Assembly: GCA_965240325.2 (NCBI GenBank) | Contig: OZ251231.1 | Span: forward strand, 2,547,988-2,611,987 | Length of the DNA stretch: 64,000 nucleotides | DNA from: Rebecca billardiae RCC1528 | Taxonomy: Eukaryota; Protista; Haptophyta | Direction: 5' to 3' | Part shown: in pieces, positions 6,644 to 32,178 of the stretch | Numbering within the stretch: position 1 is the first letter of the stretch | Layout: each line of letters opens with the position of its first letter | Notes under the pieces: generated by a model | The model's database searches: none | Told to the model about the DNA's origin: nothing | What the model saw: the letters and a program-made list of their open reading frames with translations, nothing else | Position numbers and translations under genes: made by a program

Positions 6644-9566
6644 ATGGCGACGCGCGCGTCGGCTCGGGTGGAGGCGCGCGCCGCGCAGGCGGCGGACGAG
6701 TCCGACACCGCGAGCTCGGCCTCCTCGGCCGACGAGCACGAGGGCGCGGGCGCGCGCGGACGCGCGCGCGGGCCGCCGCGCTCGAGCGCGCGGCGGCGCA
6801 GCGGCGCGCGAGAGGCGGGCTCGGCGGGCGGCGCGGCGGCGGAGGAGAGCCCGGCGCGCGCGCAGCCGCCCGCCAAGCGCGCGCGCGGCGCCGATCCCGC
6901 GCCCGCGCCGCCTGAGCCGGCCGAGCCCGGCGCGGAGCGCTGGGGCATTCGGCCGGGCGTGGCGGTCGAGGTGCGCATGAGCGACGAGGGGTGGGAGGGC
7001 AGCTGGTACGCGGCGACGGTGCTCGGCTCGCGCGGCGCGCGCGTGCGCATCAAGTGGGATGCCGCCAGCCACCCCGACGACGAGGAGGAGGCGATGGTCG
7101 ACGCGCCCGCGCTGCGGCCCGTGCAGCCGAGCGCGCCCGCAGACTTTGCGCGAGCGCTCGCGCCCGGCGCGCGCGTCGAGCTGCGGCACGACGAGGGCTG
7201 GTGGGAGGTGGACGTGCTGAGCGCGGGGCGGCGCAGCTACACCGTCAGCTCCGAGCTGTACGGCGTGACGCACGAGCACGTCGACCCGCGCCGGCTGCGC
7301 CCGCGCTGGGTGTGGGAGCCGCAAGGCGGGCACGCGCGCGAGGGCTGCTGGCGCGACGCGTCCGAGCCGGCCAACAAGTACAAGCGCGACGGCACCGAGC
7401 TCGGCCCGCCGCCGCCGCCGCCGGGCGCGGCGGGCGCGGCGGGCGCGCAGCAGGGGCTGCCGCACGCCGCGTCCGCGGGCGCCGCCACGCGCCGCGCGAG
7501 CGCGCCGCCCGCGCCCTCGGCGGCGGGCGGCGCGCAGCTCGGCGCCGCGCGCGCCGCGCTCGAGAGTGCGCACGCGGCGCTGGCTGCATACCGCCCGCCG
7601 TCGGCGCGCGCGAACGCGTTCCAGGAGGGCACGCTGCGCACGGGCGAGGACGGCGCGAGCTGGGAGGTCGCCATCGCGGACAACGGCTCGAGCGTCTGGG
7701 CCCTCGAGGGCGACGTGCCGCGCTTCCTCGCGCTGCACAACGCGCTGCACGCCAAGAGCGCGGCGGTGCGCAGGCTCGAGCGCGCGCTGCCGAGCGCTGG
7801 CGCGGGCGGCGGCGGCGGGGGCGGCGGGGGGCGCGGGGAGCGGAGCGCGGCGGCGGCGGAGGCGGAGGCCGCCGCCGAGGCCGCCGACGCCGAGCAGCGC
7901 TACGCCGACGCCCTCGCCGCGTGGCGCTCCGAGCTGGAGGGCCGCGTGGAGAGCGAGCTGCGCGCGCTGTGCGAGCAGGCGCGCGCGCGCTCGGGCGCGG
8001 AGCGCCGCCGTCTCAACGACGAGCTCGAGACGTCGGCGGCGTGGGAGTTCGAGTACGTCGGCGTGCGCCGCGCGCCGACGGACCTCGACGCGCCGACCTC
8101 GCGCGCCGAGCAGTACGAGGCCGTGCTCGACGACGGCACCTCCGCCGGGCTCGCGCCGACCGCGCGCGACGCCGCGCTCCGCCGCCACTTCCACGCGGCC
8201 GCGCACGCCGCCGCGCGCGCCGCGCTGCCGCAGCCCGACCGCGAGGGCGTGGAGGCGCGGCACGCGGAGCGGGAGGGGCCGGCCCGCCGCGCGGCGCGCA
8301 AGTACGCGTACGACGACGACGACGACGACGACGACGACTACTCGGAGAACATGTGGACCAAGCGGAAGGGCGGCGGCGGCTCGGGCGTGCGCACGCGCCG
8401 GTGCAACGCTTGCGCGGGCTGCACGCGCGACAACTGCGGCAAGTGCGCGCACTGCCTCAACATGGTGCAGTACGGCGGCAGCGGCCGGTCGAAGCAGGCG
8501 TGCAAGCTGCGCAAGTGCCAGAACCCCTTCCTCCCCGACGACGCCGACGCCGCCGCCGCCGCCGCCAAGGCTCGGCGCGCGGGCGCGGGCGAGGAGGAGG
8601 AGGCACCAGACCGCTGGGGGCTCGGCCTCTCAGCGTATGGCCTCCCGGACTGCGAGATCCCGCAGCGTCCGGTGCGCGTGCGGCTGCTGGTGCGCGACCC
8701 GGAGGGCGGCGTGCTCGTCGAGGCGCCCGCGCCCGAGGGCTGGAGGCCCGGCGGCGGCGGCCGGCTCGACGCGCCCGCCGCCGAGGGCGGCGCGTCGGGC
8801 GCGCCGCGCGCGGCCGCGCCGCTCGGCGACGCGGACGCCGAGGCGGCCGCGCCGATGGAGCTGGCCGACGAGCCGCCCGCCGAGGCGGCGGCGGTGCTGA
8901 AGGCGGAGCCGCCCGCCGACGCGCCCTCGCCGATGGAGACGGAGCCGCCCGCCGACGCGCCCTCGCCGATGGAGTCGGAGCCGCCCGCCGGCGCGCCGCC
9001 AGCGCGCGCGGCCGAGCCGGCGGCCGCGCCAGAGGGCGGCGCGCGGACCGCGGCGCACGAGGCCGCGCCCCCGCCCGCCGCCGCCGCGGCGGCGCCCGCG
9101 CAGCCGCCCGCCGCCGCGGCGCGCGCGCCGGCGGACGCGGACGCGCCCGCGCGCCGCGCCGCGGCCGAGCCGAGCGCTGCGGAGGGCGCGCCCTCGCTGG
9201 AGGCCACAGCCGGGGCCGCGGCGGCCGGGGCCGCAGCGGGTGCAGAGCTGGCGGAGGTGACACCGGAGGTGACGCCGCCGCTCGCGCAGCGCCCCGCCGC
9301 GCCGATGCGCACGCCGAGCGCGCCCACCGCCGCCTCCGCCGCCGAGCCGCCCGCCGCCGAGCCGCCCGCCGCGGCGACGGCTCTTGCGCCCGGCGCCGCC
9401 GCGCCGCCGGCGTCGGCGCGCGCCGCGCCGCCCGCCGCGGCCGACAAGGGCGAGGGCGAGGGCGAGGGCGCTCCGCTCGCGGCGCTCGCGCCCACGCCCG
9501 CGCCGCGCCGCTCCGCGCGCGCCGCCGCCGCCAGTGCCGCCGCCGCCTCGCCGCCCGCCGCGGACG

Positions 9567-9616
<50 letters not shown>

Positions 9617-10499
9617 GCGCCCGCGCCGCCGCTCCCCGCGTGGGCGCCGCGCACGCTGGACGGAGTGGAGGTGCGCATGAGCGGCGAGGGCCAGCACGGC
9701 TCGTGGTACGCGGCCACGGTGCTGCACGTGCGCGGCGGCCGCGCGCGCGTGCGCTACGCCGAGCTGCGCGAGGAGTACGACGCGAAGCGGCTGCAGGAGG
9801 CGTGGGTGGACGTGGCCGAGCTAAGGCCCACGCCGCCGAGCGCGCCGCCCGGCTGGGTGCGCGAGCTCCGCGTCGGCGCGCCGCTCGAGCTGCGCGTGCT
9901 CGACGGCTGGTGGGAGGTCGACCTGGTGCGCACCGCGCGCACGCGCGCGGGCCGCGGCCCGAGCTACACGCTCGTCGCGCCGCTGTACGGCATCGTGCAC
10001 GCGGACGTGCCGGCGGCGCGGCTGCGGCCCGCGTGGCTCTTTGAGCCTGCGCGCCCGCCGTGGGGCGCGCTCTGGACGCTCGCCTCCTCCGGCCAGCGGT
10101 ACACGTGGCGCGGGGACGAGCTGCCGCGCGCGGAGCCGCTGAGCGGGCCCGCGGCGCGCGGCCGCGCGCCGAGCGCCGGCCCGAGCGGCTCGCGCCCCGC
10201 CGACGCCTCGGGCTCGGAGGGCGGCGGCAGCGGCAGCTCGTCGGAGGACGAGGGCATGGCCGTGCTGCGAGCGCTCGCGGGCGCGCGCGCGCGCGGCGGC
10301 GCGCACGACGCCGGCGCCGAGGCGGACGGCGAGGAGGAGGCGGGGGACGCGGAGGCGGACGCGTGCGCCGTGTGCGCCGCGCGCCGGGCCAAGAAGCGCG
10401 GCCGGTGCGCGCGCCACCGCGCCGCGACGACCATCACGCTCGGCGGCGCGCGCCGCGGCGAGGGCGGCGCGTCAGAGGCGGGGCGCTCCGCCGGCCGCT

Positions 10500-28339: not shown

Positions 28340-29495
28340 CCTCTACTCTCTAGCCAGCGTGCACGCAGGCTCTGGCCACCGCGGGGCCAACGGTGTCAGA
28401 TGATCGCGTCGCGCCGTGCTGCACTCACGCACCGCCGTCCAGGCGAAGAAGCCTCGCCGTCGACGAGCGTGAGTGGCGCGTGCTGAAGGGCGAGACTTGG
28501 CGAGACCGCGAGACCGACTACCGAGGCAGGGAGCTCCCGAGACCCGAAAGTAACTCAGTCTCACAGTAAGTCGCCTGTCTGTCGCCTTGCCTGATGGCTG
28601 ATTTACAGGCGCGGCGACAGCGGGTTCCGAGCGGTCAGCGGTGCGTGCAATGCGCCCGTTACTAACAATAACATTAACGGTTCATGCGGCGCGTGAGTGC
28701 CGACGGCGACGGCTCCGAGCGGGCGCGGCACTCAGCGGCAATGTCCAAATGCAGGCACTGGTCACGGTGAGCAGAGCCTGCAGAGCGGAACACTGCCCGC
28801 CTCTCACTGAATACTGATTCTTTCTTGACTGATTGCTCAATACGAGCCGTCATAGTGCCAGCCAGCAGGACTCCTGTCTCACTCATCACGGTCCGTATCA
28901 GTGATTCGGAGACACAGGTACTAGGTAGGACGACGCGGCGGGTCTCCTGATTCGTCGGCGGCAGTGCCCGATCGTCGACACGAAGTCGGCGTTGGTGGCA
29001 GAGCATAGACTGCACCGCGATCGAAAAGCTTGAGCGCGGCCTTGAGCTGCTGAAGCGCGATCCACCTGCGCTGCGCGCGCGGCTCGCATGCGGACCTGCT
29101 GTGCCCCGAGCAAGGGCAAGGGTGCAGGTCCGGATGTCAGCTGGCAGTCTCAGCCGCTGGTAGCAGCTGGTCGAGCCTGCCCCGTGCTCCCCGGGCGGTC
29201 GCGTACACGCTTGCCGCGGCGGCGGCTGGCGCTGCGGCGACAGCGGCGTCGTCCAGGGTGCGCTTCGCCCGCTGCGGCGATGACTGAAAGTGAGTAAGTG
29301 ACAACGGATCCCAAACAATTCGTGAGTAAGTAAATGCAGTTCACTCATTATGACTGTACGACTTTCAACTTGATGATCATCCCGCCGCTCGCGAAATGAA
29401 AAGCAGGCGCGCCGCGTCCGCTGTGCCGCCGGCCGCCCATCGCCAACGTCCGCGATCGCTCGGCGCTCCGCGCCCCCTCTTCACAAGAACTGACG

Positions 29496-31719
29496 ATGCC
29501 GGCGCGCGGCGCACGCGCCCTGGCGCGCGGCGGACTGGCCGCCTCGGCGATCGGTCTGGCGCTCCTCGTGTGTGCTTTCGTGCGCGAGCACGCCGGCGCA
29601 CACGCCGACGCGCAGCCCCTCGCCCTCAGCCGCGCGGCGTTTGGCGCGCACCTGCGCCGCCTGCCCGCGCACGTGCCGCACCACGTGTGCGTGACGGGCT
29701 CGCACGCGGAGCAGACGGCGCGCGAGCTGCTCCTTCCCGAGGACGCCGAGCTGCGCGCGTTCGACATGCCCTCCCGCCTCAACCCGGAGAACGAGTGCAC
29801 CGCGCTCGAGGCGGCGGTCGGGCACACGCTCGTCACTGTCGCCGAGAAGATCGAGGACCGGTGCGCCGCGCGCTGGAAGGTGCACACGTCGACGTGCGAC
29901 GTGCTGGTGCACGCGGAGGAGGGCGCGGATTGCGAGCAGCTCTTCAAGCTCCGCGCCATCGCCGACCAGCCCCACGCGCCGCTCGTCGTGCTCGCCGCCG
30001 GCTGGTCGCACGACGCGGGCGCGTCGGCGGACGCGCCGCTGCTGCACTGCTACAAGGCGCGCGTGCGCCGCGCCGCGCAGCAGAATCTGGCGCCGCTCGA
30101 GGCGGAGGAGATGGTGCCGCACACGGCGCTGCCACTCCACGGTGGCGCGCGCACGGGCGTCGCGCTGCACGCGCTCATGCGCGAGCTGCTGGCGCAGACG
30201 GCCGGCGCGCGGCCGCACAGCCACGCGCACTGGCTGGCGCGCTCGGCGGCGCACGCGCAGCGCGACGACGCGCGCGCGCTGCGCGCGCGTCTGCTCGAGG
30301 GCAACCCGTCCGTGCGGGTGGTTGACGTGCACATTGAGATGATGAAGGCGTCACAGGGCCTGCCGCACCGTCTTGGCCACCTCGCGCCGCACGCGCCCGT
30401 GCCGGAGGCGGACACGCCGCCCGCCGCCGCGGAGCAGCCGGAGCAGCAGCAGGCGGAGGCGGGGCAGGAGCAGCCGCAGCAGCGCCGCCGCCGCGCGCAG
30501 GAGGATGTGCAGGCCCTCGTGATCGCGGCGGACGCTGGCATGGTCAGTGCCGGCTTCGCTGGCGATGACGCGCCGCGCACCGTCTTCCCCGCGATCGTCG
30601 GCCGCCCGCGGCACACCGGCGTGATGGTGGGCATGGGCCAGAAGGACGCGTACGTGGGCGAGGAGGCGCAGTCGAAGCGGGGCATCCTCACGCTCAAGTA
30701 CCCGATCGAGCACGGCATCGTGACCAACTGGGACGACATGGAGAAGATCTGGCACCACACCTTCTACAACGAGCTGCGCGTCGCGCCCGAGGAGCATAAG
30801 GTGCTGCACTCCGAGGCACCGCTCAACCCGAAGGCCAACCGCGAGAAGATGACGCAGATCATGTTCGAGACGTTCAATGTGCGCGGGTTCTACGTGTCGG
30901 TGGACGCGGTGCTCGCGATGTACGCGTCGGGGCGCACGACGGGCATCGTGCTCGAGGCGCGCGCTGGCGTGACCCATGTCGTCCCCATCTACGAGGGCTA
31001 CGTGCTGCCGCACGCGGTGCTGCGGCTCGACATGGGCGGGCGCGACCTGACAGAGTACATGATGAAGCTGCTCAGCGAGCGCGGCTACTCGTTCAGCACC
31101 TCCGCCGAGCGCGAGATCGTGCGCGACATCAAGCAGAAGCTCGGCTACGTCGCGATCGACTACGACGAGGAGCTCGAGAAGGCGGAGACCTCCTCTGAGC
31201 TCGAGCAGAACTACGAGTTGCCCGACGGCCAGATCATCACGGTCGGCAACGAGCGCTTCCGGGACACCGAGGCTCTGTTCAAGCCCAACTTGATCGGGCT
31301 GGAGCAGGAGGGCATCCACAAGCTGCTCTTCAACTCCATCATGAAGTGCGACGTCGACATCCGGAGGGACCTGTACAACAACATCGTGCTGGCGGGCTCC
31401 GAGACGATGTACACGGGGATCGCCGAGCGCGTGCAGAAGGAGATGAAGGGGCTCGCGCCCGAGTCGATGACCATCAAGATTGTGCGCGCACGCGCGCGCG
31501 CGCGTTCGTGTGTGCGTGCTTCACCGCGTGGGTGGCCGCGCTCACTCGTGCGGTGTCCGCCATCCCGCCGCATCGCAGATCGCGCCGCCTGAGCGCAAGT
31601 ACTCCACGTGGATCGGCGGCAGCATCCTCGCCTCGCTCAGCACCTTTGAGGAGATGTGGATCACGAAGGCCGAGTACGACGAGTCCGGCCCGGGCATCGT
31701 CCACCGCAAGTGCCGTTAG
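29496..31719 (+). CDS. Divergent actin with a ~335-aa N-terminal extension (hydrophobic leader, globular domain, RRRR); exons 29496-31481, 31579-31719
   Basis: From 30501: [65 protein letters not shown]; the upstream 335 codons are in frame, stop-free and coding-biased. Confidence 0.88.
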
Positions 31720-32178
31720 TCTCGTCAGCAGGTTGCTGTCCACAGCAGGCGCCGCCTCGAGTCCCGCCAGCGTGTGATTCATGATCAGGTGCACGGCCGA
31801 GGCCTCGCGCGCCGGCCGCCAGTTCACTACAGTTGAGAGTGACTCGGCGTGCCTCGGAAAGTTTGCGCACCGAACGCGCTCCGACCGTGTCACGCCGCCG
31901 GTGTCATGCCAGCCCGAAGTAGTACGTTCCCGGTCCGACAGAGCACGTGCTCGCCCGCCATCCAAATGCGTATGATGATTGATGCCGATGACGCAATGGC
32001 CGCGATCCGATCGGACGGATCGATTTCGACATCGTCATTCTCAGACTCTGTTGCGCCCGCCGGCCGCCGCCGCCCGCGGCCGCCCCCGGCCGGTGCTCAT
32101 CATAACCCCAAAATACCCGCCTTTATCAAGGCCCTGGCTTGGAGATTCTGATCATGAACCGCGATCCTTCCACCCCAT

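Follow-up and report, generated by a model that had tools for sequence, protein, structure and literature searches.

A candidate secretory-pathway pro-actin in the haptophyte Rebecca billardiae, encoded by a conserved fusion of leader, Arf-shaped domain, basic site and actin

Gene Structure

This work concerns a single gene within a stretch of 64,000 nucleotides of DNA (the window) from the haptophyte Rebecca billardiae RCC1528 (assembly GCA_965240325.2, contig OZ251231.1, positions 2,547,988 to 2,611,987), in which an actin fold is preceded, in one and the same reading frame, by a hydrophobic leader, a conserved N-terminal domain (N-domain), a linker and a basic site. Positions count from the first letter of the window, and all features of the gene lie on the forward (+) strand. 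Read directly from the window, the frame that begins with the ATG at 29496 is stop-free as far as 31592, in agreement with the first-pass annotation, which had claimed one uninterrupted frame from leader to actin. The encoded protein comprises 708 amino acids, distributed over a large exon (29496–31481) and a short last exon (31579–31719) that supplies the actin C-terminus with 46 codons ending in IVHRKCR, followed by TAG. The intron in between (31482–31578; GT..AG, 97 nucleotides, phase 0, between IKI and IAPPERKYS) had been missed in the earlier outline of the gene, which was correct as to the fusion: Its removal restores the canonical actin junction IKI/IAPPERKYS in the translation. The intron position is common to the window gene and to its paralogue on contig L001, which also shares the GC-rich style of the window gene. 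Both introns (window 31482–31525; L001:2251–2290) begin with an alternating purine–pyrimidine GC tract (gtgcgcgcacgcgcgcgcgcgcg…).

Because the G+C content of the window is 72% and many overlapping frames are open around the gene, the openness of the frame alone proves nothing. For this reason, the composition of the individual codon positions is the more telling evidence: Only the frame of 29496 has a G+C fraction of 0.86–1.00 at third codon positions (GC3) together with 0.29–0.63 at second positions (GC2) in each 150-nucleotide block between 29496 and 31445, including the block that covers position 30500. The GC3 of the coding frame is ~0.96 and unbroken over the junction of N-domain and actin, and the same analysis finds no such codon periodicity in the 600 nucleotides upstream or in the 3' flank. 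This uninterrupted periodicity from 29496 to 31445 points to selection at the level of translation that starts at ~29496 and continues into the actin, so that no intron is required at 30500. A splice acceptor at that position (gcgcag/GAG), which the first-pass annotation had named as an observation that could overturn the fusion, is consequently unsupported, as codon periodicity, homologues and transcripts all run through the junction. The window gene is thereby confirmed to encode a single protein composed of leader, N-domain, linker, basic site and actin.

A Conserved Family of Fusions

A search with residues 1–335 of the window protein returned three proteins of 666–705 amino acids that contain the same N-terminal region (44–68% identity) and then Pfam Actin. 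When an N-domain profile was scored against 1.84 billion cluster representatives, 30 proteins were found at E≤1e-3 (26 at ≤1e-10), and in all matches of sufficient length (476–820 amino acids) actin follows directly after the N-domain; a further search yielded four more proteins with this fusion. The shorter matches are located on contigs of ~1 kb or are metatranscriptome peptides, most of which look like fragments, and no convincing stand-alone full-length N-domain protein is present among the profile matches. An origin from giant viruses or other viruses was considered and rejected, since a search of viral contigs turned up no relative. The source names carried by the family members are solely “actin beta/gamma 1” and “hypothetical protein”. 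One of them, P0042, is the EukProt/MMETSP1110 protein of the Symbiodiniaceae dinoflagellate Effrenium voratum; the others stem from marine metatranscriptome catalogues and from Logan or JGI assemblies.

Searching related transcriptomes, a check proposed in the first-pass annotation, thus uncovered the same fusion, including a spliced dinoflagellate mRNA. On the corresponding 76-kb ENA contig (L004), an N-domain open reading frame (8001–9194) adjoins an actin open reading frame (9199–10470), with a stop codon between them in the genomic sequence, and the MMETSP transcript product P0042 joins the two in frame (...EYMR/HLQGY...). Since P0042 reads through this stop, ~98 nucleotides bounded by repeated GAGGC must be removed, i.e. 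a GC..AG-type intron. The implied intron (L004:9178–9280) lies within the last helix of the N-domain. Among the remaining members, the P0017 cluster holds eight full-length proteins of 681 amino acids on contigs of 2.2–2.3 kb, and the contigs L002 and L003 (2.2 kb each) are nearly filled by the fused open reading frame with short flanks.

Compared with the paralogue L001/P0001, the ratio of nonsynonymous to synonymous substitution rates (dN/dS) amounts to 0.38 for the N-domain, 0.52 for the linker and 0.59 for actin (0.81 for the first half of actin); judged by these ratios, the N-domain (0.38) and the actin (0.59) appear to be under purifying selection. Moreover, the sister pairs window and P0001, P0042 and P0049, and P0015 and P0017 recur in both the N-domain tree and the actin tree, which fits one old fusion that has been inherited as a unit. 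On sequence comparison, the succession of leader, N-domain, basic site and actin is a real conserved architecture, which defines a family.

L001/P0001 is probably a paralogue of the window gene rather than its orthologue. Its last exon (L001:2384–2560) ends early (…WITN and a stop) and is followed, out of frame, by a remnant similar to the actin C-terminus that it lacks (SKAEHPPGLGIV…), pointing to a frameshift, to a very small intron of unusual type or to a mistake in the assembly. In addition, its actin carries a 21-residue insertion and a shortened D-loop.

The N-Domain

The conserved N-domain (29625–30365; residues 44–290, ~250 amino acids) is not recognized at the level of sequence families: Residues 1–335 of the window protein match no Pfam family, Pfam Arf and Ras match none of the 28 N-domain members even at E≤10, with nothing consistent otherwise, and a PDB sequence profile search with the N-domain returned nothing relevant. 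Its predicted structure is more informative. In an AlphaFold2 model based on the 28-sequence alignment, residues ~50–230 have a predicted local distance difference test score (pLDDT) of >90, and the elements follow each other in the order helix, β1, α1, short strand, β2–β3 hairpin, α2, β4, α3, β5, α4, β6, α5, which is the topology of a G domain. The model also contains the N-terminal helix that, together with the G-domain fold, is a feature of the Arf family. A Foldseek search of this model against the PDB retrieved small GTPases exclusively (E ~1e-4), and searches of the AFDB clusters and the ESM Atlas likewise led to GTPase families. In place of the P-loop GxxxxGK[S/T], however, strand 1 is followed by a loop of three residues (VTG-SHA; family consensus HHxCxTG-x-x-A), and none of the motifs GK[S/T], DxxG and NKxD (G1, G3 and G4) is present in the N-domain alignment or the model. 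As modeled, the N-domain is Arf-shaped yet, by the defining motifs, not an Arf GTPase, and we refer to it as a pseudo-Arf domain; because it has no P-loop, it should be unable to bind GTP. The first-pass annotation had described this part as globular sequence, which holds true, and its identity can now be refined to an Arf-like G-domain fold without a P-loop. Weak language-model leads (0.71–0.78) toward a methyltransferase or Rossmann identity were ruled out, as three fold libraries gave GTPases and the β2–β3 hairpin fits a G domain.

Six cysteines are conserved in the N-domain (C65, C101, C123, C134, C146 and C185). The first four are invariant in all sequences that cover those positions, and C146 and C185 are both replaced in P0020. 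An extra cysteine pair before strands 5 and 6 is jointly present in 15 sequences and jointly missing in 14, and the stem cysteines added in P0012 and P0042 likewise come in twos. This pairwise gain and loss, which represents few independent events, points to disulfides and hence to an oxidizing compartment.

Leader, Linker and Basic Site

The leader (29496–29582; residues 1–29) consists of a basic n-region (+4) and a hydrophobic core of 18 residues (12–29); the charge of the N-terminal flank is +3 plus the free N-terminus, that of the C-terminal flank −1. The basic N-terminus and hydrophobic stretch noted at first sight are therefore genuine. All leader calls were made by hand on the basis of hydrophobic length, flanking charge and the −3/−1 rule, and by this manual reading an N-terminal hydrophobic leader is present in 17/17 N-terminally complete homologues examined. 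The leaders are of two kinds, and the split follows the N-domain tree. In the clade of the window protein (clade A), which includes the dinoflagellate proteins, a segment of 18–26 residues has Arg/Lys directly N-terminal to it, like type II (N-in) anchors; in some cases a tail of 15–40 residues stands before it and a stem of as many as ~150 residues after it. Six members of the other clades have cores of 9–17 residues at the very N-terminus, followed by small residues, and such cores are typical of cleavable signal peptides and probably too short to span a bilayer. P0024 combines a leader of the signal-peptide type with two transmembrane segments, an arrangement that is again predicted to put the N-domain on the luminal side. 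For the window protein itself, the leader would be either a cleavable signal peptide (possible cuts VCA/F or AHA/D) or a type II signal anchor.

N-domain and actin are connected by a Pro/Gln/Glu-rich linker (30366–30482), which is predicted to be disordered (pLDDT 47–67) and varies in length between homologues: Relative to L001 it shows indels of 9, 6 and 1 codons, all of them in frame, and in the full-length model of P0003 the linker residues 289–300 have a pLDDT of <50. At the boundary between N-domain and actin lies the basic site RRRR-AQ (30483–30500; RRRR 30483–30494), which corresponds to codons 330–335, with actin starting at E336 (30501), exactly where the first-pass annotation had located both. 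The site fits R-X-K/R-R and is embedded in a linker region with a pLDDT of ~50, that is, in the accessible setting of convertase-type sites. A dibasic motif occurs 11–15 residues before actin D11 in 17/20 homologues, compared with 3.6 expected from shuffled linkers, and this position is 1–4 residues before the natural first residue of actin. The motif itself varies: RRL is found in 10 sequences, others have KKKR-G, RMKR-G, RSRR-G or NKRK, and the paralogue L001 has RR-AL. R-X-K/R-R is fitted by RRRR in the window, RARR in P0003, RMKR in P0017 and RSRR in P0047.

The RRL motif brings a second class of proteases into view. The Golgi aspartyl protease ASP5 has the consensus RRLxx and cuts after Leu, and the plasmepsin V site is RxLxE/Q/D, with an N-acetylated product (PMC4764566). 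Four distinct relatives (P0002, P0003/P0044, P0029 and P0049) contain RRLxD, which fits the plasmepsin V motif. The PEXEL/TEXEL motif is absent from the window protein (RRRRAQE, no Leu) and present in the 10 RRL relatives, whose motif fits PEXEL/TEXEL aspartyl-protease sites as well as kexin/furin sites. If P0002 were cut after RRL, the new N-terminus would be EDDIAAIVID..., which is essentially that of mature actin; in the window protein, a cut after RRRR would expose an N-terminus beginning with AQEDV. In no family member has an initiator Met been kept at the start of actin, and the actin can consequently not be made alone.

The Actin Domain

The actin domain occupies the remainder of the large exon (30501–31481; residues 336–662) and the last exon. 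It is matched by Pfam Actin (PF00022) over the whole fold, with 342.4 bits for 30501–31486 (3.7e-102) and 72.8 bits for 31579–31716 (2.7e-20; cut-off 27). The first-pass annotation had called it a full-length actin, which is correct as to length; it is not a normal actin, as the phosphate-binding loops and Q137 are replaced. The P1 loop (30525–30548) reads AADAGMVS in place of the canonical DNGSG..K, the P2 loop (30954–30977) EARAGVTH in place of DSGDG, and on the adenine side GSET replaces GGTT (31392–31412). At the position of the catalytic Q137 (within 30897–30920) there is a D, and H161 is kept. Thus, neither the phosphate loops P1/P2 nor the GGTT loop nor Q137, by which the actin family is defined, is retained. 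The D-loop (30612–30647) is intact, and the hydrophobic-plug region and the C-terminus are kept as well. Its sequence identity to the actin of P0002, which is near-canonical, amounts to 73%, and its branch is short (0.12 vs 1.13 for P0001). The nucleotide loops have been specifically rewritten (e.g. G13 to D, G156 to R), most of the remaining actin being near-canonical; as a speculation, the cleft might be bridged by the newly acquired Asp and Arg where the nucleotide would otherwise sit.

Comparable alterations are spread over the family. Q137 is lost in 8/11 distinct full-length members compared, six distinct relatives have a shortened D-loop, and P0004 is hardly recognizable as actin. P0015 retains all canonical actin motifs, which makes a normal actin the probable ancestor of the family. 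The first phosphate loop of actin contains an NGS sequon that includes N12, and this residue is replaced in 8/11 distinct full-length members; its loss would make sense for a luminal protein and is only suggestive. The 708-residue window protein contains no N-glycosylation sequon at all, which is uninformative because Asn is scarce in GC-rich coding sequence. Two members, P0003 (L003:22–2139) and P0044, carry a C-terminal Pfam Thymosin domain (PF01290) after actin at residues ~670–705 (28.7 and 25.8 bits vs a cut-off of 24.8). Docking of this tail on the actin of P0003 is unsupported by AlphaFold2 (tail pLDDT ~33). The full-length model of P0003 reaches a predicted template modeling score (pTM) of 0.78 despite 131/705 disordered residues, which suggests a defined interface of pseudo-Arf domain and actin, so that the N-domain may bind actin. 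The variants, i.e. an erased ATP pocket, a deleted D-loop and a thymosin-beta tail in cis, suggest selection for a non-polymerizing actin module, and the overall picture is that of an actin fold that seems to have been kept as a monomeric module and not as a filament former.

Proposed Mechanism and Alternatives

The architecture and its conservation, the fold, the motif statistics and, for one relative, the fusion at the mRNA level are observations, whereas translocation, disulfide formation, cleavage and the final location of the protein are inferred. In our estimation the product of the gene is probably a “pro-actin” of the secretory pathway and belongs to a conserved family that has not been described. 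We favor this interpretation because all complete members examined have a leader, the cysteines behave as pairs, a basic site is conserved in a disordered linker, and the actin has no Met of its own. The proposed sequence of events is as follows: The leader would direct the chain into the endoplasmic reticulum (ER) and would either be removed as a signal peptide or remain as a type II anchor whose N-terminus stays in the cytosol. In the lumen, the Arf-shaped N-domain would fold with disulfide bonds and probably pack on the actin domain. A basic-site protease would then cut the exposed linker at RRRR; this protease may be kexin/furin-like for the window copy, and a plasmepsin V/ASP5-like enzyme is possible for the RRL relatives. 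The cut would free an actin-fold module of ~373 amino acids with an almost natural acidic N-terminus. Because its ATP pocket is replaced, the freed module is probably a nucleotide-independent binding or structural protein, luminal or extracellular, and not a dynamic filament former. The first-pass annotation had already conceived of a preproprotein: Its fusion, leader, basic site and intron-free junction are upheld by the comparison of homologues, and its account of the globular domain and of the actin has been corrected as described above.

A more far-reaching version, which we put forward tentatively, envisages, for the dinoflagellates and for this GC-rich organism alike, a dedicated extracytosolic actin system, in which the disulfide-bonded, GTP-blind Arf-like pro-domain would fold the actin and keep it monomeric, acting as an intramolecular chaperone that replaces the chaperonin CCT, until the actin is released by the basic-site protease. 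The freed actin would then work in the lumen of an organelle, at the cell surface or outside the cell.

Several points weigh against the secretory interpretation. Both modules are derived from archetypal cytosolic proteins. The folding of conventional actin needs the cytosolic CCT, and transmembrane-anchored Arf-like GTPases such as SR-beta face the cytosol. The four invariant cysteines could, together with conserved histidines, bind a metal instead of forming disulfides. P0006 and P0007 have no dibasic motif at the usual place, and P0002 and P0015 retain the NGS sequon. Finally, as to RNA runs, three marine metatranscriptomes share ~5% of the words of 29300–31900, and none is listed for 29496–30640.

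The first two of these points lead to the most serious alternative, a membrane-tethered cytosolic actin, which we regard as unlikely although deserving of attention. Here, the N-terminus would anchor the protein in an organelle or ER membrane, pseudo-Arf domain and actin would face the cytosol in the manner of SR-beta-type proteins, the non-hydrolyzing actin monomer would provide a docking or nucleation site, and the RR motif would be structural. Such a topology suits an N-domain whose structure, down to the N-terminal helix, is that of an Arf-family G domain, and it suits actin and the thymosin-beta of the P0003 tail, both of which are cytosolic modules; it would also leave the folding of actin to CCT, on which, as is well established, it depends, and the pTM of 0.78 suggests a fixed two-domain assembly that has no need of being cut. 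It accounts poorly for the cores of 9–17 residues in six members, which are too short for a bilayer and typical of cleaved signal peptides, and in the anchored members the basic residues lie N-terminal, which predicts an N-in/C-out orientation. Likewise, the gain and loss of cysteines in pairs and the conserved dibasic motif in a disordered linker speak against it.

Considerably less probable is a destination in a complex plastid or in its periplastidal compartment. The leader would then provide the signal peptide of a bipartite presequence, and a plastid sub-compartment would receive an actin-like component. In algae whose complex plastids are of the red type, F/Y/W/L at +1 serves as the rule for import into the stroma (PMC12136025), and the cut VCA/F would leave Phe at +1, as VAA/L would leave Leu in the paralogue; family members are also found in plastid-bearing dinoflagellates. 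The segment after the leader is, however, short with acidic residues (net negative in P0001), unlike transit peptides, and the dinoflagellate members have long acidic stems or begin their fold straight after the leader. A disulfide-paired domain is better suited to the ER or the exterior, and an actin directed to the periplastidal compartment was not found in diatoms (PMC3101018).

That the gene is a decaying relic, i.e. a real fusion in a non-functional or neutrally drifting copy whose ruined ATP pocket would thereby be explained, appears quite improbable. The dN/dS of actin relative to the paralogue (0.59, and 0.81 in the first half) is admittedly very high for an actin, and in the paralogue L001 itself there are insertions, the D-loop is shortened and the C-terminus is broken. 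Decay is nevertheless difficult to reconcile with an open reading frame that is intact over 708 codons and shows extreme codon bias, with the short actin branch and the 73% identity to P0002, with changes that are concentrated in the nucleotide loops and leave the D-loop and most surfaces in place, and with the dN/dS of 0.38 in the N-domain.

Two genes in a mis-joined model, with actin spliced in at ...gcgcag/GAG (30500) and the upstream frame as a separate gene or chance open reading frame, are largely refuted and scarcely credible. It is true that 30491–30500 is acceptor-like and that many frames are open in DNA of 72% G+C. Yet the codon periodicity crosses 30500, and what lies upstream is a conserved domain whose fold is predicted with confidence and which is joined to actin in all long homologues, transcripts among them. 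Actin moreover begins without a Met, and each indel that separates the linker from that of the paralogue preserves the frame.

Significance

In textbook accounts, actin is a cytosolic protein that has no signal peptide, relies on CCT for its folding and uses ATP. These assumptions would be challenged by a conserved family of protist actins with leader, pseudo-GTPase and basic site. The recurrence of the architecture in dinoflagellates and in many marine protist transcripts speaks for a class of actins so far undescribed, whose site of action is probably outside the cytosol. If translocation and processing were confirmed, it would merit the status of a new kind of system, in which the Arf fold would serve a new purpose in a lumen and actin-like proteins would play an extracellular or luminal role in ecologically important plankton, including relatives of coral symbionts. 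The family would moreover constitute a natural test of whether the actin fold can mature without CCT, and it offers natural mutants in which the ATP pocket is erased (window genome), the D-loop is deleted (several relatives) or a thymosin-beta is attached in cis (another).

Comparison with Known Systems

Searches of the literature on signal-peptide, secreted, luminal or fused actins yielded no description of an actin that follows a signal sequence or a domain of the Arf type, in line with the first-pass annotation, which knew of no described actin with this leader and basic-site architecture. With conventional actin, the window protein shares the full-length fold, the D-loop, the plug region and the C-terminus; it differs in the 335 preceding residues, the ER-type leader, the missing start codon of its own and the rewritten nucleotide loops. 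The natural actin fusions that are known, ubiquitin–actin of chlorarachniophytes and filactin of Dictyostelium, are both cytosolic. Ubiquitin–actin fusions of chlorarachniophytes were reportedly described by Archibald et al. in 2003. In these fusions, too, actin is the C-terminal part of a precursor whose partner is expected to be removed so that the N-terminus of actin is exposed; there, however, the partner is ubiquitin, the enzymes are cytosolic deubiquitinases, a leader is absent, and the occurrence is known solely from Bigelowiella and relatives (PMC6332867). Pfam detects no ubiquitin domain in the N-terminal 335 residues of the window protein.

A survey of the whole actinome of Dictyostelium reported no signal peptide or transmembrane helix in any actin or actin-related protein (PMC2441452). 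Filactin from the same organism likewise has a conventional-type actin after a long N-terminal extension, but it is cytosolic/nuclear, contains neither signal peptide nor transmembrane helix, and its extension is unrelated (PMC2441452). The engineered actin–thymosin beta-4 has the same domain order as P0003/P0044, and in this laboratory construct the tail blocks polymerization in cis (PMC5976186); the fusion in P0003/P0044 is by contrast natural, and the tail is absent from the window copy.

With PEXEL/TEXEL and kexin/furin proproteins, the known ones of which are cut in the ER or Golgi, the family shares the order of a putative signal sequence and then a basic motif. It departs from them in that the motif lies ~300 residues from the leader and the cargo is actin. 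From the Arf/Arl/Sar1 GTPases, in turn, the N-domain differs by 6–8 conserved cysteines and by its predicted luminal location. Taken at face value of its sequence, the window gene product is an actin-fold protein in an unprecedented architecture and a predicted compartment equally without precedent.

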